Source: Mytilus californianus (lineage: Eukaryota). Taken from it: a DNA stretch of 64,000 bases. Made by a program: the position numbers and the translations under genes. Positions 7,739 to 49,806 of this stretch are shown here, one piece after another; positions within the stretch are counted from its first letter, which is position 1, and every line of letters starts with the position of its first letter. The notes under the pieces are model-generated. The model made no database searches. It was given only the letters and a program-made list of their open reading frames with translations, and had not been told where the DNA came from. The stretch spans positions 28,520,001 through 28,584,000 of the forward strand of contig NW_026262712.1 in assembly GCF_021869535.1 (NCBI RefSeq), read 5' to 3'.

Positions 7739-8648
7739 AAACTAGAGGCTTGAAAGTGCCTGTGTCGCTAACTTTGGTCTATGTGCATATTCAACAATGG
7801 ACACTCTCCAACATTGTAGACGAGAATAGAATTCATGACAAAAATATATGTTTTGTTGTTCTTGTATTGCTGATAATTTAGTCTGTTTAGTTTCTCTCTA
7901 TCTTTTTAAGTTTTTGCTCAAAACACAAAAGAGGGTAAAAAAATCCTCATTTAAGGGCAATCACTCCTATAAAGAGTGACAGTCTACTACCTATATCGGC
8001 AAAAATTAACTTGTAAGTAGATCTTGCCTTGCTGATCATTTTTGCATATTTAAGTTTCTATCTATCTATTATAATTTTAAAGATACAAGACAAAAACGCA
8101 AAAGATTGGTAAAAGTCATCATCAAAGGGCAATAACTCTATGAGACTTATTTGTAGAACGTGTCTTGCTGAATATTTTTGCAATTAAAAGTTCCTCTCTA
8201 TCTATTATAGTTTTCAAGATAAGAGGCAAAAATGAAATGAAATAAAATGGTAAAATTTGTCATTTAAGGGCAATAACTCCTATACGAAGTTGTCTGGCAG
8301 TTTTGACGAATACGGACATTTGGTTGAGCTCAACATTCTGAACATTTCATCATCTGTAAGATTTTCTCTATTTATAATGGTTTTCAAAATAATAGACACA
8401 ACTTGCATTTAACCCCTTTGTTCTATTTTAGCCATGTCGGCCATCTTGATTGCCAGGCGGTATCATTGGACATTTTTTGTATACTAGATACCCCAATGAT
8501 AATTGTGACCAAGTTTAGTTAAATTTGGCCCAGTAGTTTCAGAGGAGTAGTTTTTTTTTATAAAAGTTAACGGACGACGACTACGACGGAAGACGACGGA
8601 CGACGAACGCCAAATAATGAGAAAAGCTCACCTGGCCTGAGCTAAAAA
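7739..8648 (+). mobile_element. Helentron-associated (HINE/DINE-1-like) non-autonomous element nested in another repeat
   Basis: Starts ACTAGAGGCT...GCCTGTGTCGCTAAC, has internal AAGGGCAATAACTC-bearing units and a GACG microsatellite, ends AGCTCACCTGGCCTGAGCTAAAAA. Same family as 40333-41885. Confidence 0.65.
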
Positions 8649-13702: not shown

Positions 13703-14542
13703 GACTTCATACAGGAACTTCTTAGGAAGAAAGATAAGAAGTTAGCAATATCCTTTAACTCTACGTTCCGCTATATAGATGATGTTCTCTCACTAAATAA
13801 TACAAAATTTGGTGACTATGTTGAACGAATCTATCCCATCGAACTAGAGATAAAGGATACTACAGATACAGTTAAGTTTGCCTCATATCTTGACTTACAT
13901 CTAGAAATTGACAATGAGGGTCGGTTGAAAACAAAACTTTACGACAAAAGAGATGATTTCAGCTTCCCAATTGTGAACTTTCCATTTCTATGTAGCAACA
14001 TTCCAGCAGCGCCTGCATACGGAGTATATATCTCCCAATTTATACGATATTCCCTGGCTTGTGTTTCCTATCATGATTTCCTTGATAGAAGATTGCTGCT
14101 CACAAGGAGGCTTTTAAGCCAAGAGTTCCAAATGGTGAAGTTGAAATCATCCCTTCGTAATTTTAACGAAGGCATTACGAGTTGGTTGACCGTTATGGAA
14201 TAACCGTTTCACAGATGATATCGGATATGTTCCTTATGTCGTAACTACAATACCCTTCCCTTTTCACGAATGTGACTTACCGAATTAGACTATTTACCGG
14301 ATTTGTAATAACATAAGCAACACGACGGGTGCCACATGTGGAGCAGGATCTGCTTACCCTTCCAGAGCACCTGAGATCACCCCCAGTTTTTGGTGGGGTT
14401 CGTGTTGCTTAGTCTTTAGTTTTCTATGTTGTGTCATCTGTACTGTTGTTTGTCTGTTTGTCTTTTATTTTTGGCCATGGCGTTGTCAGTTTGTTTTCGA
14501 TCTATGAGTTTGACTGTCCCTCTGGTATCTTTCGTCCCTCTT
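13703..14542 (+). mobile_element. 5'-truncated Penelope-like retroelement (Naiad-type): RT palm/thumb plus 3' UTR
   Basis: Stop-free frame from 13703: DFIQELLRKKDKKLAISFNSTFRYIDDVLSLNN...SYLDL...LKTKLYDKRDDF.FPIVNFPFLCSNIPAAPAYGVYISQ. YIDD at 13772-13783. Frameshift near 14165. No GIY-YIG endonuclease downstream of RT. Confidence 0.85.
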
Positions 14543-35363: not shown

Positions 35364-35919
35364 TGTAGCAACATTCCAGCAGCGCCTGCATATACGGAGT
35401 ATATATCTCCCAATTGATACGATATTCCCGGGCTTGTATTTCCTATCATGATTTACTTGATAGAGGATTGCTGCTCACAAGGAAGCTATTAAACCAAGAG
35501 TTCCAAATGGTGAAGTTGAAATCATCCCTTCGTAAATTTTACGGACGCCATCACGAGTTGGTTGACCGTTATGGAATAACCGTTTCACAGATGATATCGG
35601 ATATGTTCCTTATGTCGTAACTACAATACTCTTCCCTTTTCACGAATGTGACCTACCGAATTAGACTATTTACCGGATTTGTAATAACATAAGCAACACG
35701 ACGGGTGCCACATGTGGAGCAGGATCTGCTTACCCTTCCGGAGCACCTGAGATCACCCCCAGTTTTTGGTGGGGTTCGTGTTGCTTAGTCTTTAGTTTTC
35801 TATGTTGTGTCATCTGTACTATTATTTGTTTGTTTGTCTTTTTATTTTTGGCCATGGCGTTGTCAGTTTGTTTTCGATCTATGAGTTTGACTGTCCCTCT
35901 GGTATCTTTCGTCCCTCTT
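35364..35919 (+). mobile_element. 5'-truncated Penelope-like (Naiad-type) retroelement
   Basis: Nearly identical to 13990-14542. ORF end IRYSRAC...KLKSSLRKFYGRHHELVDRYGITVSQMISDMFLMS* followed directly by the 3' UTR. Confidence 0.85.
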
Positions 35920-36407
35920 TTGAAATATGCCGCACAGCCCTATATATTGACCTTTGAAAAAAAAGTAGTGCATATGAGCTTTCAATTCCAATATATTATT
36001 AAGAGTTATAAAACGTTAGTTGTGACAAAAATTTAGCTCCAAAATCCAGGTCGTTCATCGCTGTGTTGTCTGGTTAAATACTGTTTGCAAACATTGGGCC
36101 ATACATTAGATGCACTTATGTGATTTCTGTTTGTTTTTTTATTGTTTGTGTGTTGTTGCGTTGTTATCTCTTATGCAGTGTAGACACATTCTTTAATTCA
36201 TATGCCATTATAAGGAAATGTGAATTTAGATTTCTCGGAAGTACATAACTGACTATGATTAACATACGTGCAGCCACCCTTTCATGCATTAAGTTCAAAA
36301 TATTGACATCAAATAGCGCTAGATGAATATAAACAGATTCATTATACACGAGCGTTATCCATCCGAGTCCAAATAACGTATATCTTGGTTAAAGATTTCC
36401 TTCAACG

Positions 36408-38308
36408 CCAAATTTTCAACAACATTTAAAAATAGGGAAATGGTATCAAAGTTGTTAACAATGTTAAGCTCTAAAAACATTTTGAATTAATGAATATATG
36501 CGTGAAGTTATTGAAAAATCTTTAATTTGTTTCATTTATTAAACTTTTAAATTCTCAAATTACATTAGGTTTTAAAATTTTAAAATGCTGACCCTTCGAT
36601 CGACATGAGTTTACCTTACTTACATCAAATTAACGCAAGTTTTATATGAGACAAAATATATGAATACTTTCAATGATTTCTGAAGTTGACCTTTGAACTT
36701 GGTTTTTAATTGAAATATAATCATCTCTGAAATTTACGACAGGCATATTCTTAAAGTACAAGGTGTCGTCTTTCAAATGATAAATAATTTAGGTGTATGT
36801 TCGATGGGGTGATTGAATCCTTGGTCAACGAACTGTAACGTTAAAAAACACACGTGTATGTCACCTGATTTAACTAACAATTCTTCGCCAACCAGGTAAA
36901 AACTCAACAGAGATACAGGTAAATAAAGGAATTATGGGACATTAGCAACATGAAGTTTTGTAAGTCAGTTGACAATATTTTGCTCAGTGTATATCTGCTA
37001 TAACGTACGTATACTATGCTTATACCGGGGCTTATACGCAAACAATGTATAATCAAATTCAAATTTTTCAACAAAATTTAAAAGTAGGAAAATGGTATCA
37101 AAGTTGTTAACAATGTTGAGCTCTAAATAAAATTTTGAATTAATGAATATATGCGTAAAGTTATTGACAAATCTTTAATTTGTTTTATTTAAACTCTTAA
37201 ATTCTCAAATTCCAGTAGGTTTTAAAACTTATAGATTTTGACGCTTCGATTGAAAAGAGTTTACTTTACTTACACCAAGTTAGTGCAAGTTTTTTTTATG
37301 AGATAGAATATATTAAAAAAATCAACGGTTTCTGAAATTGACCTTGGAAGTTAGATTTTAATTGAAATATGACCATCTTTGAACTTTACGACAGGTATAG
37401 TCTTATAGTACAATGTGTCGTCTTTGAAATGATATATAATTTAGGAATATGTTCGATGGGGAGATTAAATCCTTGGGCATCGAAATGTAAGGTTAAAAAA
37501 CACACGTTTATATGTCACCTGATTAAACTAACAATACCTCGCCAACCAGGTAAAACATCATCTAAGATACTGGTAAATAAAGGAATTATGGGACATTAGC
37601 AACATGAAGTTTTGTAAGTCACTTGACAATATTTTGCTCAGTGTATATCTTATATAACGTACGTATACTATGCTTATACGCAAACAATGCATAATTAAAT
37701 TCAAATTTAAAAAATTTAAAAGTAGGAAAATGGTATCAAAGTTGTTAACAATGTTAAGCTCTAAATAAAATTTTAGATTAATGAATATATGCGTGAAGTT
37801 ATTGAAAAAAAATTTCCAGTAGGTTTTAAAACTTTCAGATTTTGACGCTTTGATCGAAAAGAGTTTACCTTACTTATACCAAATTAGTGCAAGTTTTTTT
37901 ATGAGACAAAATATATGAAAACGTTCAATGGATTCTGAAGTTGACCTTTGAACTTGGTTTTTAATTGAAATATGACCATCTCTGAACTTTACGACAGGCA
38001 TATTCTTATAGTACAAGGTGTCGTCTTTGAAATGATATATAATTTAATAGGTGTATGTTCGATGGGGAGATTAAATCCTTGGGAATCGAACTGTAAGGTT
38101 AAAAAACACACGTATATGTCACCTGATTAAACTAACAATACTTCGCCAACCAGGTAAAACATCATCTAAGATACAGGTAAATAAAGGAATTATGGGACAT
38201 TAGCAACATGAAGTTTTGTAAATCTGTTGACAATATGTTGATCAGTGTATATTTGCTATAACGTACGTATACTATGCTTATACGCAAACAATGTATAATC
38301 AAATTCAG
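36408..38308. repeat. Large tandem repeat, 3 units of about 652, 638 and 605 bp
   Basis: Anchor GGTATCAAAG at 36442, 37094 and 37732. All internal blocks are repeated in the same order. Confidence 0.92.
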
Positions 38309-38562
38309 GTATAGGCAAGATTAGAGCTGTTCTGTATCTCATACTATTGATTAATTTCAGTCAGAATTCTGATTCGTAAAAATTATCTCCATTTTATACC
38401 ACCTTAATTTTTCATTCATGAATATGGAAGCCAGTGTAAAGGTGACACGCTGTCAATTTAGCTCTTGAAACCGATTAATTTATTCACATGGAATTATTAA
38501 GATCCTTATACTTTTGTCCTTTTTGGTGGATTATGAACTTAATTTTTGTGAGAAATTCGACA

Positions 38563-39185
38563 TTTATGTCGCGAAAGCGAGACAAGGCGATCCTATATTC
38601 AGTCGTCGGCGTCGGCGTCGGCGTTCATCATTTATGTTCAGGCTGGGGTTAAACTTATAAAAGACATCAATAACTTTTTCAATTATGAAATTATGAAATT
38701 TAGACAGAAGCTTATTTATTAACAAAAGACAGTACCCAGAGCCAAGTATTGAAAATATGTATTTTCCTATTTCCGCATTTACTGATAAATGGACTTAGTT
38801 TATTGTACTATTAACATTCAGATTAAGTGCGAGGTTAAAGTTTTTTTTAGAAATCAATAACTTTGTCAAACCGTCATGGAATTTTTATGAATTTTGGACA
38901 AAATCTTGTTTATGATCAAAAGACAGTTTTTCCAAATTAATATTCATGTTGAATCAGAGGTTAAAGTTTGTTACACATCAATTATTTTCAAATTGTCAAT
39001 TCTTCAAAGAATTTTATTAAATTTGGCAGAGCTTATTTATGGTTAAGAGAAAATGTCTGTAGCAATCTTTGAAAAAATATTTTTATTTTAGTTTCTGTAT
39101 TTTTCTGATAGATTTAGTTTTTTTTCGTTTTTACACCGTCAGCAACAATCACGGGCGAGACACAAGTTCAAATGTGCATCTGGTT
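38563..39185 (+). mobile_element. Degenerate Helentron-like element
   Basis: Remnant GTCGCGAAAGCGAGAC end, (GTCGGC)n microsatellite, distal GGGCGAGACAC. Same layout as 53474-54472. Confidence 0.5.
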
Positions 39186-40332
39186 CAGGAAAAATGGTAC
39201 CGGTATTTATTGCTTTTTACATTGAATTTGTATGTTAAAAGACAAAAGTATCTTCCAACTATTAAGCATCATTTACCGGTCTTTTGGGATTTTTGTCAAC
39301 TAGAAATGACTTATCGGTTATCAGGGTGAAATTTCGAAATTTCAATAAATCACAAATTGCTTTTATTAACATATTTCATGGAAGGGTAGGTTTGAAATTT
39401 TCAGAGGTTGTAGACTGAAAAACTTAGCTAACAGACACAAAAAAAATTAAGTTAAGTTACATATTTCTAACTGATAAATATGGCCGTTTTTCTCAACAAA
39501 ATTTCCGCTTACCGTTAAGACAAACATGTGCACCTGAATATTTGTAAAAACATGGCAGGACTAGATAAACATATTTTAAATGCATTTTATGTTTCAGAAA
39601 ATTAAAAGCTTTTCGGGATTTTGGGATATCTTTTTTTTGTTTCGTTCCTACAGAAGATGTATTCATTTGTAAACGATTAAACTCGTGAATCACTCCTTGG
39701 CTGCTCCGTTGATAGAATATGGGACGGAACCGAAACCCTGGTGGGAGAGCAGCAAACATCACAAGTTAAAGCTATCGTATCAAAGTCTTTGAGTAACAGC
39801 TCGTTTGTCTCGCTGTTGCTAGTTCGCCTTAGGTGCAGGAGGTCATGGTTTCGGCTAGGATTCAAAATAATGTGCCATGGTAGCTATAGCTATATATGTC
39901 TTTCTGCAGAATGCCACATTGTGCGCTAGCACGTAAAAAATCCGGCTCAGTGTGTCGATCTAGTACAAAACATGGTTTTTATTGATGTTCTCTTTCTGAA
40001 TAAACACTCAATTTGTCAATGGACGTCGCACAAAGGTCTAAAGTTTTGTCTATATAAATTGATGTGGTATCGTCTTTATATTTCAGGAAAAATTCAATGA
40101 TTCAATTTGTTGATATATGATGTGTACGAACGTTTTGGGTCTTTGGTTTAAAACATAACCCATTATGTCTCTATGTTATTTTTGTTAAGTGTTGAATACT
40201 TGATGGAGTTTGTATAAATAGTGAAACAGCCTTCCAATAAACGTCAAGACTATTTTGTTCGTGATAGCAATACAACATAGACATATCTAAATTCTAAATG
40301 AATGAGTGAAGAGCTGTATTTACATAAAAAAA

Positions 40333-41885
40333 ACACTAGAGGCTCCCAAGAGCCTGTGTCGCTAACCTGTATCTACTGTTGTTTTGGAAATCATGTAAAG
40401 TAAGGTAAAAATCATAATCAATAGTATTAGATACCCTAATAATGATTGAGGTCAAGTTTGGTTTAATTTGGCCCAGTAGGTAAATTAAAAGCAGGTCATC
40501 CCATTGTAGTCTTACAATAGTTGCTGAAGACCCCTCATCATTATTTAAATTAGTTTTCAAGTTGTGACCATTTGAAATTGGTTTTTTTTACAATTTTCCC
40601 TTAGACTTCTATAGTACACCCCTATGTTCACTTTTTATTCATGGCGCCCATGTTGGTTGTATGACAGGGTCATGGGATACATTTTTTAATCAAGATATCC
40701 TTTTGAAAATTGTGGCTAAATCTTATTCTATTTGGCCCAGTAGATTAAGTGGAGAAGATTTTTGTAAAAGATTACAAAAATTTACGAAAAATTGACTATA
40801 AAGGTCAATAACTCCTTAAGGGGTCAATTGACAATTTTGGTCATATTGACTTATTTGTAAATCCTACTTTGCTGAACATTATTGCTGTTTACAGTTCATC
40901 TCTATCTATAATAATATTAAGATAATAATCAAAAATTGCAAAATTTTCTTAAAATTACCAATTCAGGGGCAGCAACTCAACAACAGGTTGTCTGATTCGT
41001 CTGAAAATTTCAGGGCAGATAGATCTGAATCTGATGAACATCTTTAATCAGGCAGATTAGTTTTTGAGATATAAGCCAAAAACTGCATTTTACCCTTATG
41101 TTCTATTTTTAGCCATGTCGGCCATCTTGGCTGGGAGGCGGGGTCATCGGACACATTTTTTAAACTCGATACCCTAATGATGATTGTGGCCAAGTTTGGT
41201 TAAATTTGGCTCAGTAGTTCAGAGGAGAAGATTTTTGTAAAAGATGACCAAAATTTTCGAAAAATTGTTAAAATTGACTATAAAGGACAATAACTCCTTA
41301 AGGGGTCAATTGACAATTTTTTTATCATATTGAATTATTTGTAGATCTTACTTTGCTGAACATTATTGCTGTTTACAGTTTATTTCTATCTATAATAATA
41401 TTCAAGATAACAACCAAAAACTGCAAAATTTCATTAAACTAATCAATTCAGGGGCAGCAATCCAACAACCAAAAACTGCAAAATTTCATTAAACTAATCA
41501 ATTCAGGGGCAGCAATCCAACAACGGGTTGTCTGATTCGTCTGAAAATTTCAGGGCGGACAGATATCAACCTGATAAACATTTTAACCCCTGTCAGATTT
41601 GCTCTTAATGCTTTAGTTCCAGAGATATAAGCCAAAAACTGCATTTTACCCCTATGTTCTATTTTTAGCCATGTCGGCCATGTTGGATGGCAGGCGGGGT
41701 AATCGGACACATTTTTTAAACTAGATACCTTAATGATGATTCTGCCTAAGTTTTGTTAAATTTAGCCAGGTAGTTTCAGAGGAGAAGATTTTGTAAAAGT
41801 TAACGGACGACGACGGACGACGGACGACGGACGCCAAGTGATGAGAAAAGCTCACTAGGCCCATTGGGCCAGGTGAGCTAAAAAA
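40333..41885 (+). mobile_element. Full-length HINE/DINE-1-like element with internal tandem units
   Basis: 5' hairpin AGGCTC-CCAA-GAGCCT (40340-40355), three homologous internal units starting at about 40619, 41093 and 41649, (GACG)n, 3' hairpin AGCTCACTAGGCCC-ATT-GGGCCAGGTGAGCT (41849-41879), A-rich flanks. Confidence 0.75.
41411..41520. repeat. Perfect 55-bp tandem duplication inside the HINE
   Basis: CAACCAAAAACTGCAAAATTTCATTAAACTAATCAATTCAGGGGCAGCAATCCAA x2. Confidence 0.95.
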
Positions 41886-41889
41886 GATG

Positions 41890-43733
41890 ATGGCTAATAT
41901 AACAACTCATATTGATATCATAAACAATATCAAGCAGGACTCAAAGCATAAAAGACATTTTAAAAACTGGCCTAAGAAATTCTAGTTTCAACACCGTAAA
42001 GTTAATCTGTATATCTAAATATGAGTACATATAGTTTTAGCAGAAGCCGGTGTTAATAATCAACAGCTACTTTCATAAATGAAAGTGTATGGTTTGCTTG
42101 CATGTCTGATCCCCGGGTTTATAATTGCAGCCATCATGGCTTTATAAATATGCCAACCGATGTTAGGAATTAAACCTTGGTCAGTAAACTGGTCTTTATT
42201 TCACGGGATGCAGAATAACCTTCGCACCTTTCGTCTTCCGTACTTTTTTTTGGTCTATTTTCTGGAAGAATATCATTTCAGAATACATGTACTAATTACT
42301 AGAATATTAATGTTCTGCTTTTACATTTTATACTGTCACTATTTATATTGATAACGTTATATCGGTATTACGTCCCTGGTGGACATCAATTAGAACTGCG
42401 ACAAGAAAAACACGTTCTTTGTAGTACCTTTCTCAAAAATAATTTTGCAAAAACAAGAACATGTTGAAACGTATGAAAACAATTGATTCTCTTCTAAATT
42501 TCTAAAATTAATAAAGGTAGTCACATAACACCGGGGTTCTTGAAATATAAATACATGTATATAAATTGTACTTACCTAAGGCCAATACTGCTTCCATTTT
42601 AAAATCATCAAAACAGTTTTTCAAATTTCAGAAAAGGTGTAAAAAGCTTTGAAGGGGGTTAAATGTTCATCGTAAACTGTGACATTGCCAAATGTGGAAA
42701 CTAAAAGGAATGTAGCTTTGACATCCTGGAAAGTCCTGTGATTCGACGAAACATTATTTAAGGATGTAAGGATATTATTTACAATTTAGCATAAATGGTC
42801 CTTATATTATTGTATTCTAAATTAAGCTGTATCCAATTGTCTTTTAAAATGAAGTTTTATTACATAAAACAGTTAAAGAAATGTAATATTGTGCTATGGT
42901 CATTTTTTTTATTCGTGTCTTTCATATTGTTTTTCTTTTTTGACATAGTTATTTTTTTATAGTGATTAAGATTATAACATAATATGCTGTACCCCAATTT
43001 TTGACTTTTTTACCTATTATGTTTGTTTGTTTTGCTCACACATTGTTGTCAATATAATGGAAATCTATGCCCCTGTCATATAAGTGAGAGGTTTAACTAG
43101 CTATAAAACCAGGTTTAATATACAATTTCTACATAAGGAAATATCAGGAATATGACAGTTGTGTCCATTCGTTTGATGTGTTTGGGCTTTTGATTTTGTC
43201 TTGTGATAAAGGACTTTCCGTTTTGAATTTTCCTTGGAATTCGATATTTTTGATATTTTACCTTTTAAAAATACATATATGAGACAATAAAAATTAAGGT
43301 ACTCTGTGTGACGATACGCGGTAAAATGTTGTTTAAGATAACGTTATCGATGAATAACCTGCTCTATTTGTCTCTAATTGTATCACGGTAATTAATAAAT
43401 GCGATTTGAATAATGACGATAATTTTTATACTATTCCTACAACATAAATGTAGCCAGCCAAGTTAAGATCATAGTACACCAAAGTCATTATAATATCTCT
43501 TTATATATTTGTTTTATTTGAAAACTTTTTTTTTTGTAGAACTGAGGAAAAAAAGATATTATGGCTGGCGCCTCGAACATGGAGTGGTGTAAACCATGTG
43601 GAAGAGAGGGAGAAGAACAAAGAGCTCATTCATGGTGTAGTGGCTGTTCAGAACCATTGTGTGAGGAATGTCTAAATTTCCATCGGAAAGGAAAAACAAC
43701 AGAAAACCACAAAACAACTTCAATCCTCAAAAT
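41890..43733 (+). repeat. Local segmental duplication of the upstream region and 5' CDS of TRIM-like gene C (sister copy about 45325-47152)
   Basis: Collinear blocks such as CCGTAAA.TTAATCTGTA.ATCTAA (41994/45431), TGTTCTGCTTTTACA (42311/45761) and AAATGTAGCCAGCCA (43446/46836). The ATGs are 3421 bp apart. Confidence 0.9.
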
Positions 43734-43737
43734 GTAA
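43561..43737 (+). CDS. B-box1-only partial duplicate (58 aa): truncated paralogue, microprotein or extra upstream exon of gene C
   Basis: MAGASNMEWCKPCGREGEEQRAHSWCSGCSEPLCEECLNFHRKGKTTENHKTTSILKM*, too short for the ORF track. Acceptor at 43538-43539, all Cys/His ligands intact, possible donor GTAAGG at 43734. Confidence 0.7.
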   Translation: MAGASNMEWCKPCGREGEEQRAHSWCSGCSEPLCEECLNFHRKGKTTENHKTTSILKM

Positions 43738-44938
43738 GGTTTTGTCTATATGAAAATATGTGATATTGTCCGTTTGACTTTTAAACATTTGCAGAAAATA
43801 ATATGAAAAAAAACTAATCATATTATTTTTGATGTATGTTTATATATGATAAATACGAACTATGACGATCAAATTTATAATATCAGTTCTATAATTAAAA
43901 TAGTTACGTATTAGGACTATATATCATTTTGATTTTTGAAGTGTTAAATACTTACTCATGTTACTGGAGTTAGTATAGATTTTGAATCAGACTTTCAATC
44001 AAAACAAAAACAACAACTGTCATGTGTCCTGAATGTCTGTTTAGTTGTACTTTGTGACTTAACATATTCAAATGCTAAGGGACACTAACAAAAATAATCA
44101 TCACTTAACATTTTGATTAAAAAAATAATAGTTAATATATTTATGCTATTGATTCCTTAAACAAAAATGTTTCAAAAAAATCTTTTGTCTTTGTTTTATA
44201 AATTATTTCTATAATCTAAAAAGGACTATTTGCAAGCTTTGTATTCATTTCGCATGGTGAATTTCACAAAACAAAGATGCTCTGAAAAGATTTAGCAAGA
44301 AACACAGACGGAAAAATCCTTATATAAATATCTTTTCTTGGCAAAATACACATCTTTTGAGCGTTAAAATAAAAAAAAAACTAGAATAAGAAAATACAAT
44401 TGTGAAAAGGCCTTAATGGCTCAATTAAAATAGATTGGTATTAATTGTCTACCTTACTTAAATTTAAAGAAAACATTACAATTACACCCAAAATTTAAAA
44501 AAAGAATATATAATTCCGAAAGTGTATAATTGTTTTGATGCAGAGTTGTAACAAAATCATTCGTTTCATTCATGGAATAGCATTGCCAAAATGAACTGCC
44601 TAATGTTTTATAATAAGTGAAAACAAATTTCAACAATCACATGACATTAAACTGGACTAAAATCTAATTTTGTTTCCCTGTCAGTTAAGGTCATTTTAAT
44701 ATCTTAATAAAGGCGACAGTAGTATACCGCTGTTTAAAAAGTTCTAAATGTGTAAAATCTCATATTTCAATGAAGCAGACATTCAAAGCACATGTATGTT
44801 GTAATGGTTTTAATTGGAAGACTGATACACTCTGTTTACTTATTCAAACAAGTCTTTATCCTTCAAAAAAAAAACAATTAGCAAAGAGACCTGATGGTTA
44901 CCTTTTAAAACTATTGACCCACAATTTAAGAATTAATA

Positions 44939-45119
44939 CTGTGGATTCATTATTATTCGTTGGATACCAATTTTCGTGGTTTTCGTGGGTACAGGTGAAC
45001 CACGAATTGAAATGTTCAACGAATTACAAATTTTCTATCAGGTTGTATGCATGCTTTGGCAAAACCACGAAATCTGGTACCACGAAAATTGGTACCAACG
45101 AAAATAAATGAATCCACAG
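44939..45119. mobile_element. Tc1/mariner-type MITE
   Basis: TA|CTGTGGATTCATT ... AATGAATCCACAG|CA: 13-bp TIR, TA flank intact on the left and one mismatch on the right. Confidence 0.75.
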
Positions 45120-46166
45120 CAGTCAGTGTTCGCATATATCATATAGCAATATATACTAACAACAAAAATGTCGATTTGTAAAAATGGATGTTCAAGAAAT
45201 TGTTTTCTTCAAATATGTAGAGGTCAAACGAACAATACGATTATGTCTTGTTTATTAGTTATATAATCCCACACCTACATTGGAAGCGGGTTCAATGAAA
45301 AGTGTTATTTACATAAACAATGATGTTTTATGTAGCAACTCATATGGCTATCATAATCATTACGAATTAGGGTTAATTTGAAGCATTAAAGACATTTTGG
45401 AAATTGACCTATTAAACGTTTGTTTCACTACCGTAAACTTAATCTGTAAATCTAAGTATGGACACATATAGTTTCTGCAACAGGCTTTGTAACTAATTAT
45501 TAGTTTGTCTCATAATTAAAAGTGTTTGGTTCGCTACATGACTTTTCCCCAGCTCTATCATGGCAAGCATTATGGTTTTATAAAAATGCCAACCAATAGG
45601 AAGAAACAAACCTTAGTCAATGAACTGATCTCTACCTCTACGGGATATACAGAATAATTTCCACAACTTTCGTCAAATGTTCTATGGTCTATTTTCTGAA
45701 AGAATATCATTACTTGAAAACAGACATAATTATATAATGTTTCAATTGCTAGACCATAAATGTTCTGCTTTTACAGTTTATACTGTCACTTTTCATATTG
45801 ATAAGGCTATATGCAGTATCAATTGATGCCCCTGGTTGACAAAAATCATGTTCTTTGTAGCACCTTATTCAAAAATAATTTTGCTTTTGCAAAATCGTAC
45901 CTGAAATGCATTAAATAACTGTTTCACTTCTACACTTTCAATAAATATAGGTTATTTGATAACACCGAGGTCCTTGAAATATAAAGATATAAATTGTACT
46001 TATTCAAGACCAATACTGCTTCCAGTTCACAATCATAAAAATCGGTTATTCAAATAACAGAAAAGGTGGAAAAGCTTGAAAGCTAGTTTAATTCCTTTCC
46101 GCTGTAGACTGTGAAATTGCCAAATTAGGGATAATAAAAGGAGAATCAAGAGGTACGGAACTTTAA

Positions 46167-46453
46167 AAAAGAGGCAGAGGATACCAAAAGGACATCCAAA
46201 TAAACTGCCAACGACATGGCTAAAAAAGAAAAAGACAAACAAACAAACAAAAGTACACAAAACACAACATAGAAAACTGAAGACTGAGCAACACGAACCC
46301 CGCCAAAAACTAAGGGTGGTCTCAGGTTCTCTGGAAGCAGATCTGGCTCCACATGCGGCACCCGTCGTGTTGCTCCCGTTAGTACAAACCCGGCAATAAG
46401 TCTTATTCGGTACGTGACATTCGGGGAAAAGGGGACGGGATTGTAGTTACGAC
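46167..46453 (-). mobile_element. Diverged 3' UTR fragment of the Penelope-like family
   Basis: Reverse complement of GTCGTAACTACAAT...CCACATGTGGAGCAGGATCTGC...GGTATCTTTCGTCCCTCTT. Absent from the sister duplicate at about 42760. Confidence 0.75.
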
Positions 46454-46981
46454 AATTGGAATTTAAACATCTAATTCTATGAATCAAGGCATACATTATT
46501 TTCTGAAGTTTCGGATGGGAATATAACAATAGTATTTACAATTAAGAATAAATAGTCCACATTATTTGATTCTTTATCTGGCTGTATCCACTCGTTTTAA
46601 AATTTTATATTAAAATGGTAAAAAGATATAGGAGATGCATATATGAGGGGGGAAAGGGACACCCGTATGATGATAAACGATACAATGTTGTTAACTTTAA
46701 CGATGAATATTTTGCTCTATATATCGCTAATTATAAAAATGACGATAATTTCTAGGTTCATTCGACGCTAACAGAAGCGTAAAATGAAAGAAGAGGTCGT
46801 TTGACGATTGCAATTAAATACCATTTCTACAGCACAAATGTAGCCAGCCAGTATAAGCTTATAGCAGTATACACGTATATACATCTTAATTCGTAATTCA
46901 TACACATTCAAAATTTCTCTTAATATGTTTGTAATGGAAAATATATATTTCTTTTCTTGTAGAACTGGAAAAAAAGATAGT

Positions 46982-48676
46982 ATGGCTGGCGCCTCAAACA
47001 TGAAGTGGTGTAAAGCATGTGGTAGAGACGGAGAAGATCAAAGAGCTCATTCATGGTGTAGTGACTGTTCAGAACCATTGTGTAAGGAATGTCTAAAATT
47101 CCATCGGAAAGGAAAAACAACAGAAAACCACAAAACAATCCAAATCCTCAAAAGTTTTGGTTCATCGCGATCGGTTATCGAGATTCCAAAAACATGTCAT
47201 ATCCACGATTATAAGAAATTTTCTATCTATTGTATACATCACGATCAAATCGGTTGCGCCTCTTGTTTACGGGATCTGCACATCGAATGTGAAGAAGTAA
47301 TTTCAATAGAGAAAGCTTCACGAAGCTTGAAGAGAACCGCGATTGAAGATTTACAACGGCGAATTTCAGATTGTTCGCTTATAATAAGAAAAATAATCGA
47401 ATTGTATCAGAAAAATTTGAGTTCAATATCTGAACAGAAAAACGAATATAGAGAAAAAGTAAGTAAAGTTCGAAAGGATCTTAACACGTGTTTGGATGAG
47501 CTAGAACAAAATGTCGATAGAAAATTAGATGATTGTGATACAATATGCAAGGACGAAATTGAAAAAAGTATTAAAGATTTGACCACTAGAAAAAGTAAGT
47601 CAGAGTACTGGCACACTGCTATTGAAACGTTAACAGAAGATGATGATGATGGTTCCCAATCCAGAATCTTTGCAGCAATCAAGACGATAGACCATTTACA
47701 AGTCGAAGAAGAATCATTCTTGTCAAAGTTTCAAGAAGATTTGGTGGCATATGAACTGTTCTCGTCTCCATTTGACTTTTTAACAATTAAATCAATGCTA
47801 GCCACAATAGCTGATATAAAAATAGAGAAAATGAAAACTACAGTTCAACAATCATCGAATACCCAACAGATTGACACCTATATCCAACAAGGAAAAATCC
47901 AACTTCTTCACAAAATTAGCAGTTCTAAATTGGAAATGACAGCATTTGGCAAAGCCTGTCTTACTATGGACAATCGTATAGTTTTTGTCGGATACCCACT
48001 TCGTGTTTATGACATTAGTAGCTCCAGTGTTCACACAATACAAGTAGAATCTATATGGTCATCAGACATAACTTGTGATTTGAAAAACAATGTTTATGTG
48101 TCTTTTCCTGGTGACGGTATTTACAATATTGACATTAAGAACTTGAACGAAGGCCATCGTATCAACACAAAACAGGGTATATATCAACGGGTCAAACAGA
48201 AGAATGGCTTACTTTATTCAACCTGGGATGACGAGATCGTACTTTTCAATCAACAAAAAACTATAGTAAAGAAGATCGTACTTTTCAATCAACAGAAAAC
48301 TATAGTAAAGACCTTGGAATGTATATTCAAGCCAGTATTTATGTGCGTCGAAAACTGCGATGGAATATACATTTCTGACGGTAAATCAATCATACGTATG
48401 ACTGAAACTGGTTCACATAATATTGTTCCTACCATAATGGAGATGGGTGAAGTCATTACAGGACTAGACGTAGATGGGCAAGGGCAGTTATATGCATGTA
48501 TTTATACCGATGTAGTAGGAACAGTTGTGCGAATAAACACGACTACAGGATACAGGGAACCAGTATTAGAAAATCTCGTAACTCCGTGTTATATCTCTTT
48601 TCATCCGACTAAGAATATGTTTCTTGTTATCACTGATCGCGGAAAGGAATGTTCAGTTTATTTTGTCACAAATTAA
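46982..48676 (+). CDS. RING-less TRIM-like protein C (564 aa): two B-boxes, coiled coil, NHL-like beta-propeller
   Basis: Intact ORF from MAGASN, paralogous to gene A along its full length. Acceptor ttttcttgtag at 46961-46962. Carries a 13-aa internal duplication and a DDDD insertion. Confidence 0.92.
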   Translation: MAGASNMKWCKACGRDGEDQRAHSWCSDCSEPLCKECLKFHRKGKTTENHKTIQILKSFGSSRSVIEIPKTCHIHDYKKFSIYCIHHDQIGCASCLRDLHIECEEVISIEKASRSLKRTAIEDLQRRISDCSLIIRKIIELYQKNLSSISEQKNEYREKVSKVRKDLNTCLDELEQNVDRKLDDCDTICKDEIEKSIKDLTTRKSKSEYWHTAIETLTEDDDDGSQSRIFAAIKTIDHLQVEEESFLSKFQEDLVAYELFSSPFDFLTIKSMLATIADIKIEKMKTTVQQSSNTQQIDTYIQQGKIQLLHKISSSKLEMTAFGKACLTMDNRIVFVGYPLRVYDISSSSVHTIQVESIWSSDITCDLKNNVYVSFPGDGIYNIDIKNLNEGHRINTKQGIYQRVKQKNGLLYSTWDDEIVLFNQQKTIVKKIVLFNQQKTIVKTLECIFKPVFMCVENCDGIYISDGKSIIRMTETGSHNIVPTIMEMGEVITGLDVDGQGQLYACIYTDVVGTVVRINTTTGYREPVLENLVTPCYISFHPTKNMFLVITDRGKECSVYFVTN

Positions 48677-49294
48677 CATGAACTTTTTAAATACAGTCGA
48701 CTCTCGTTATTTCAAAGTCAGCCAGACCAGAGAAATATTTCGACATACCCATAGTTCGACTCAAACGGAAACAAGAATTTTGACATACTAAGGGACACAA
48801 CACTTGCTTAGCCAGATCGATGTATTTGTATGTTATGGCCTTTATATTTTATGTCTCTTATCTATTTTTTTGTACTTGATAAAGTTGAATTAAGTTTTAA
48901 TCTTTAAATTATAATTGACATGCTTGTTAAATACACATAAAATTTATCTTGAATCACAAATTATATTGTCTTCATCGTTCAAATAAGTTCATTGTTTGAA
49001 TTTTATTTCCTTAATGTTCAGTGGCAAATATTTCATTCATATCCAGACCAGGACAAATCAACAACAACTTCAAGAAAGTTCTGAAATATAAATGATCTGG
49101 GAGGAAGGGCGGGACATTGCACTGCCACTAGTAAAAATGGACAATTTAATGTCACATACTTCTAACAAATTGCCCCTCTTTAAAATGTTTTACTAACACC
49201 AATTTCGTCTAATTATCTCGTTTTTGACATGTACTATTCGATCATGATGGTTGTTGTATTAAGAAAAAGTCTTTTAAAAAGCATCTGTAAAGGA

Positions 49295-49300
49295 ATTAAA
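49295..49300 (+). terminator. Probable polyadenylation signal of TRIM-like gene C
   Basis: ATTAAA about 620 nt after the stop, in TAAAGGAATTAAAG...TTTTGTGTCGTCGGATTTCTGTC, homologous to the blocks behind genes A and B. Confidence 0.5.
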
Positions 49301-49806
49301 GGTATAAAAATAAATTTTGTGTCGTCGGATTTCTGTCTAAGTGATGTATAACTAGGATATTTTATTCATAATGTTGAGCATTTACATTCACTGAATCATT
49401 GAATTGAGTTGCAAGGTTTGATTCCAAACTCGAAAAAAAAAAATGAACGAATGAGCCTCTTTAACAATTGACAGAAAATTTCAATTTTTTAGACTAACAG
49501 CTAAGCTGTTAATTGAACAATAATCCATCTGAATTTTGCATTTCAATAGGATATTAAAAACTGCGGGTTTTGAGTACAAATTAACTGTTTGATGGACACT
49601 ACATTGTTTCACAAAAAAGTATCAATAACCAAAAGTATACAGAAGTGCGTGCATGCAGATACATTGTGTATATTTCAATACATTGAGAGCATGGCGTGTC
49701 GAATTCCTGATAGCATAATTTTCAGCGACACATATTTTACATTTACACATTGTTTATAGTCAAGCGGATATAAACTAATTGGGATATTCAAGTTCTAGAC
49801 ATAGTG

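Follow-up and report, generated by a model that had tools for sequence, protein, structure and literature searches.

The gene LOC127704926 of the mussel Mytilus californianus, referred to here as gene C, is one of three TRIM-like genes (A, B and C) in the 64,000-nucleotide window analysed in this work (contig NW_026262712.1, positions 28,520,001 to 28,584,000, forward strand). In all probability it is a three-exon gene in which 43540-43733 (window coordinates) is the first coding exon, exon 2, spliced from 43733 to 46963. The exon carries a duplicated B-box. This corrects the gene model implied by an earlier, first-pass annotation of the same sequence: gene C has three exons and its true start codon is at 43561, not at 46982. 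The product would be a protein of 628 residues with a new B-box1, the old B-box (B-box1'), a B-box2-like finger, a long helical region and an NHL-like six-bladed beta-propeller, but no RING.

Exon 2 carries an intact B-box and an in-frame donor

A pyrimidine tract and TAG (...ttgtag) end at 43539, exon 2 starts at 43540 and its ATG occupies 43561-43563. The frame runs for 57 codons and two further nucleotides to 43733, where it is followed by GTAAGG, with the GT at 43734-43735. Read on without splicing, it ends ...K-M-stop after 58 residues. In gene C the acceptor AG lies at 46961-46962, the exon begins at 46963, and the frame from the ATG at 46982 to the stop at 48674-48676 gives 564 residues. 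When the two are joined, the AT at 43732-43733 and the A at 46963 form an isoleucine codon, the next 18 nucleotides encode TGKKDS and MAGAS follows, in frame and with no stop.

All eight zinc ligands are intact in exon 2 (C10-x2-C13-x12-C26-x2-C29-x4-C34-x2-C37-x3-H41-x8-H50). In all three lineages compared, M. californianus, M. coruscus and a third mussel lineage, the exon-2 product has the ligand spacing of a type 1 B-box (C-x2-C-x7-12-C-x2-C-x4-C-x2-C/H-x3-4-H-x4-9-H). The 58-residue piece on its own scores above the Pfam gathering cut-offs for zf-B_box (27.1 bits, cut-off 24.1) and ANCHR-like_BBOX (34.2, cut-off 27), so its resemblance to a B-box is not due to chance. A genome search with the exon-2 sequence found four matching places only, exon 2 itself and genes C, B and A.

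The first-pass annotation had listed the acceptor, the ATG, the eight ligands and a GTAAGG donor at the point where homology breaks off, and each of these proved correct when checked in the sequence. Its 13 mismatches in 171 coding nucleotides and its spacing of 3421 nucleotides relative to gene C came out the same on recomputation, and both of the products that it predicted, 628 residues from the in-frame join of 43733 to 46963 and 58 residues unspliced, were verified. It was right to call the piece a duplicate, but placed it upstream of gene C, of which it is actually exon 2, and the duplicate is far larger than it had noted.

Exon 2 is joined to gene C in RefSeq and in M. coruscus contigs

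RefSeq holds the 628-residue protein for M. californianus as XP_052065113.1 to XP_052065116.1 (LOC127704926; P0017 in our search output). Residues 1-57 of XP_052065113.1 match 43561-43731 and residues 59-628 match 46964-48673, both with 100% identity, and residue 58 is the split isoleucine codon. The exons were searched separately, and the 628-residue sequence was taken from the RefSeq entry. The 58-residue query retrieved one protein cluster, whose second member is this RefSeq protein.

A word search with the 564-residue protein gave matches confined to mussel proteins. The top match was a 612-residue protein (P0001) on a contig of 2119 nucleotides (L007) from run SRR13891805, and the 612-residue product is encoded in three intronless contigs (L007, L010 and L011) from SRR13891805, SRR13891811 and SRR13891816. 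The junction in each of them reads ...PILE-I-IGKKES-MTGAS, preceded and followed by B-boxes. Aligned with the window, L007 covers 37511-37613 (or 38115-38217), 43540-43733 and 46963-48685, breaking exactly at GT/AG sites. From 318 to 2119 it is colinear with an M. coruscus genome locus (L009) at 99.67% identity, and a sequencing-adapter remnant stands at its start. The three contigs are most simply read as mRNA contigs of M. coruscus.

Both copies of the B-box are present in one mature mRNA, in frame and joined at canonical sites, in the three contigs of the M. coruscus orthologue, and in M. californianus by the RefSeq model only. It is very likely that M. californianus splices exon 2 in vivo as M. 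coruscus does. The new architecture by in-frame splicing that had been proposed from the window is thus borne out, by the exact product in RefSeq and by the same junction in the orthologous contigs. Public annotation already contains the three-B-box product, which represents an ordinary kind of domain gain through exon duplication and does not open any long-standing question. Our literature search found no description of the exon 2 duplication.

Two artefacts were considered for the three-B-box contigs. An assembly chimera is rejected: a k-mer switch swaps paralogues at homologous positions; it does not set them in tandem with GT/AG joints, and in three runs. A processed retrocopy is unlikely given the identity and colinearity of L007 with its parent locus, which extend through the 3' untranslated region (UTR), and the adapter at its start.

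Exon 2 arose by tandem duplication

Self-comparison showed that 41887-43733 is colinear with 45320-47153, at about 71-76% identity in non-coding and 92% in coding sequence. The flanks are more diverged than the exon, as had been claimed: identity is 71% over 860 columns (41887-42709 against 45320-46142) and about 76% in a second stretch (42764-42850 against 46521-46603), compared with 92.4% in the coding sequence. A more sensitive comparison found that 43735-44005, just past the break, is homologous to 40039-40250. As the sequence from 43735 onward is homologous to that from 40039 onward, exon 2 derives from a head-to-tail duplication of about 3.4-3.7 kb. We thus find what is expected of an exon born by internal duplication: the copies are colinear, they have one common breakpoint, and the sequence after the break matches the start of the unit.

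The anatomy suggests that the duplicated unit began inside intron 1 and ended at codon 58 of the coding exon. This would have created a novel joint, at which intron sequence now adjoins the truncated exon copy. The hexamer at the joint is GTAAGG, where the beginning of the unit (40038) has CTAAAG; either the donor was made by later point changes or the other copy lost its donor. The fit in splice phase would have come about by chance. Eighteen nucleotides of the former 5' UTR of the main exon would have become a six-residue linker, and the old start codon at 46982 an internal methionine codon. In the gene as it probably works now, transcription would start at one of three tandem non-coding copies of exon 1 (about 36.9-38.2 kb), exon 1 would be spliced to 43540 and 43733 to 46963, and translation would begin at 43561.

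Gene conversion as the source of the high identity between the exons is neither needed nor shown, and the site table contains no contiguous tract. A single site in that table is uniquely common to both M. californianus copies. Of about 33 synonymous sites, 3 differ between these copies, a low divergence when set against the rate in the flanks (P about 0.006-0.02).

Several repeats lie within the duplicated region. On a first look, the genome has thousands of candidate copies of the element in intron 2 that resembles a miniature inverted-repeat transposable element (MITE; Table 1). A contig of the third lineage (L012) precisely lacks the element at this site, which places its insertion in the M. 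californianus lineage. In intron 1, within duplication copy 1, about 40430-41800 is taken up by a satellite-like array whose period is about 474-556 nucleotides and which was inserted after the duplication; a related stretch lies at 8144-8637, near gene A. A dispersed repeat of about 260 nucleotides at 46198-46454 in intron 2, found in duplication copy 2 only, was also inserted after the duplication. Further copies of it lie at 14237-14496 and 35613-35873 (- strand), with 83% identity among copies.

Exon 2 is conserved in three lineages and probably predates their split

The third mussel lineage, closer to M. coruscus, is represented by the 2.5 kb genomic contig L012 from SRR29152236. This contig spans the breakpoint, runs colinear with 43213-45710 and has retained the acceptor, the ATG, the open frame and GTAAGG. 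Between M. californianus and L012 the coding sequence of exon 2 is 92.5% identical and free of gaps, while the introns, with their many gaps, reach 87-88% identity at aligned bases. The M. californianus and M. coruscus exons differ by six synonymous and six non-synonymous changes, a ratio of non-synonymous to synonymous rates (dN/dS) of 0.22; the binomial probability of at least six synonymous changes out of 12 is 0.017. Third codon positions make up nine of the 15 variable sites among the exon 2 orthologues (P 0.03), and no copy compared has lost any of the eight ligands.

Four diagnostic sites are fixed (22, 42, 83 and 103), and the four-point sum of the distances from the tree analysis is 32, against 41 and 42. 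Together with the common breakpoint, these place the duplication before the species split. It seems probable that exon 2 has since been kept under moderate purifying selection.

B-box1' shows a different pattern. Between L007:337-507 and the M. californianus sequence at 46982-47152 there are 15 non-synonymous and five synonymous differences, with the ligands all kept. In the M. coruscus lineage B-box1' has evolved fast and mostly by replacements, which may reflect relaxed or diversifying evolution after the duplication.

Points against inclusion and other readings of exon 2

Several observations weigh against exon 2 as a conserved coding exon of gene C. The M. californianus entries are XP_ accessions, that is, computed models. 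The model submitted by the depositors of the M. coruscus genome, CAC5401352.1 (548 residues), leaves exon 2 out, and the 10 kb upstream of the gene in that assembly (L009) did not yield the exon. The two M. californianus copies compare at a dN/dS of 0.78, so constraint on the protein sequence is not tight. In a maximum-likelihood tree of the 171-nucleotide segment the placing of these two copies is not resolved, so orthology rests on the common breakpoint, the four diagnostic sites and the four-point sum. Exon 2 was also not found near two M. coruscus paralogues that we fetched (L013 and L014).

The dN/dS of 0.78 against gene C's own B-box would fit an exon 2 that is the decaying leftover of a partial duplication, with the RefSeq model an artefact and the M. 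coruscus contigs specific to that species. We regard this as very improbable. In three lineages the exon has kept its acceptor, ATG, frame, eight ligands and donor undamaged, even though its flanks have diverged by about 12%, with many insertions and deletions, from one lineage to another and by about 29% from one copy to the other. Synonymous and third-position changes are in excess, and the orthologue is spliced as predicted. Even less probability attaches to the alternative offered by the first-pass annotation, a stand-alone B-box microprotein of 58 residues. Retention of intron 2 or early polyadenylation would produce it, beside or in place of the long protein, and it would titrate the full-length paralogues. 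Left unspliced, the frame does end two codons after it enters the intron, in M. californianus as in the third lineage, and yields 58 residues in each. This stop, however, is part of the donor motif (ATG|TAAGG or GTG|TAAGG) and is conserved because the donor is conserved. The only 58-residue database entry (P0016) comes from reading a contig without splicing, and that contig follows the genome colinearly over 2.5 kb rather than being a short transcript; we saw no contig ending shortly after exon 2. The microprotein proposal is left unsupported.

The possibility that exon 2 is a regulated cassette is compatible with its being a coding exon of gene C rather than opposed to it. Skipping, from exon 1 to 46963, with a start at 46982, would give a two-B-box isoform of 564 residues beside the one of 628, toggling the number of B-boxes. 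The two start codons have equally good contexts (A at -3, G at +4), the acceptors of exons 2 and 3 are duplicates of each other, and the upstream open reading frame (ORF) of exon 1 ends in TAA with either next exon because exons 2 and 3 both begin AACTG. However, exon 2 is present in all three assembled M. coruscus contigs. No 564-residue product of LOC127704926 is on record and four RefSeq accessions share the 628-residue protein, but both are weak points as the collection keeps only the longest product per gene. We consider such a cassette possible but on balance unlikely. That inclusion of exon 2 is regulated more broadly, by skipping or by retention of intron 2, to yield three-B-box, two-B-box and perhaps 58-residue forms, seems improbable. 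If true, regulated inclusion, through a donor supplied by point changes at the joint, would tune the self-assembly of an immune TRIM-like family expanded in bivalves.

The 628-residue protein may resemble a TRIM-NHL protein without a RING

With exon 2 included, the 628-residue protein has Pfam B-box matches above threshold at residues 9-55 and 73-119. A B-box2-like finger at 134-164 is weak (15.7 bits, below the Pfam cut-off). The Pfam scan of this protein gave no RING family at threshold, the first domain being the B-box at residue 9, and the protein therefore lacks the N-terminal RING of the TRIM/RBCC family. The same scan gave no named C-terminal domain, and the NHL repeat model had no match. 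A profile of the mussel family matches the region of TRIM28 that spans B-box1, B-box2 and the coiled coil (6h3a, E 1.8e-10) and the tandem B-boxes of MID1 (2jun, E 1.2e-6).

An AlphaFold model built from an alignment of nine sequences does poorly on the fingers and helices, the long helices at 182-340 having a predicted local distance difference test score (pLDDT) below 50. Residues 370-628 are modelled as all-beta with pLDDT 80-94; their best matches by target template modelling (TM) score are the NHL domains of Brat (1q7f, 0.70) and Thin (6xg7, 0.67), and other six- and seven-bladed propellers (SMP30, WD40) give similar E-values. On this model the protein would work like a RING-less protein of the TRIM-NHL type. 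By analogy with TRIM B-boxes, the added B-box1 would be an extra zinc-bound interaction or self-association module ahead of the B1-B2-helix core, and could thus change the valency or the range of partners.

Within the propeller, 48236-48313 is an in-frame tandem duplication of 39 nucleotides encoding 13 residues (IVLFNQQKTIVKK / IVLFNQQKTIVKT, three nucleotide differences). The proteins of M. coruscus and the third lineage lack the repeat, which coincides with a dip to low confidence at residues 483-492 in the model.

Comparison with known systems

Like the TRIM-NHL proteins (Drosophila Brat, Thin/TRIM32; TRIM2/3/71), the mussel protein has B-boxes, which a predicted long helical stretch and a putative six-bladed propeller at the C terminus would follow. 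It differs from them in having no RING, starting with a B-box, and carrying two fingers of the B-box1 type in tandem before the B-box2-like finger. With TRIM28/KAP1 and MID1 it has in common, by profile match, the B-box1-B-box2 tandem, but unlike TRIM28/KAP1 it has no RING, PHD or bromodomain, its C-terminal domain is another one and there is one B-box1 more. The name TRIM28, given to the orthologue by the M. coruscus depositors, is a label of similarity and not of orthology.

Domain gain by internal tandem exon duplication is a well-known general mechanism. The mussel gene fits it in having two colinear copies and one breakpoint, in reusing the acceptor and keeping the frame, and in carrying both copies in one mRNA. 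In contrast to the usual case, the unit ended inside an exon and not in an intron, so the new exon needed a donor from the adjoining intron sequence, and a former 5' UTR became a coding linker. Plants have B-box microproteins (miP1a/miP1b, BBX30/31), and the unspliced mussel reading would likewise give a B-box-only peptide of about 60 residues, but the mussel exon is joined to a full-length gene.

The TRIM-like family has expanded in bivalves and has links to innate immunity. A B-box orthogroup is among the bivalve expansions (PMC8382680). Exon 2 would add a lineage-specific architecture, B1-B1'-B2, to this expanded family. The gene offers a clean and datable example of domain gain, in which a duplication appears to have ended inside an exon, intron sequence at the joint to have provided the donor and a 5' UTR to have turned into a linker.

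Other features of the locus

Table 1. Coordinates of the features of gene C and of the duplication, in the window
Feature	Position	Strand	Description
Non-coding exon 1, copy a	36857..36959	+	most diverged copy, 89% to the M. coruscus transcript; then GTAAGT donor
Non-coding exon 1, copy b	37511..37613	+	96% to L007:19-121; then GTAAGT donor
Non-coding exon 1, copy c	38115..38217	+	96% to L007:19-121; then GTAAAT donor
Duplication copy 1	40038..43733	+	part of intron 1 and first 194 nt of the ancestral coding exon
Exon 2 (the finding)	43540..43733	+	21 nt of 5' UTR, ATG at 43561, 57 codons and 2 nt, B-box type 1, phase 2 end
Duplication copy 2	43734..47153	+	intron part and 5' end of exon 3
Intron 2	43734..46962	+	3229 nt, GTAAGG to TAG; first ~270 nt homologous to 40039-40250
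MITE-like short high-copy element in intron 2	44939..45120		~180 nt, inverted ends 44939-44980 and 45079-45119
Exon 3, coding part	46963..48676	+	linker TGKKDS, former start codon 46982, B-box1', B-box2-like finger, predicted long helix and six-bladed propeller

The three copies of exon 1 stand in tandem, about 604-654 nucleotides apart, and each has a GTAAGT or GTAAAT donor. They may lie behind the four RefSeq transcript variants with one common protein. Copy b contains two upstream ORFs of three codons, the second of which ends in a TAA made across the junction of exon 1 and exon 2. An Rfam scan of 36000-49500 gave no match.

Gene B lies on the opposite strand (24528-22807, - strand) and has no duplicated B-box exon upstream. 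A tyrosine replaces the fifth zinc ligand of its B-box1 (...EPLYGEC...), and its longest ORF is just 438 residues, from a GTG start. This paralogue looks impaired.

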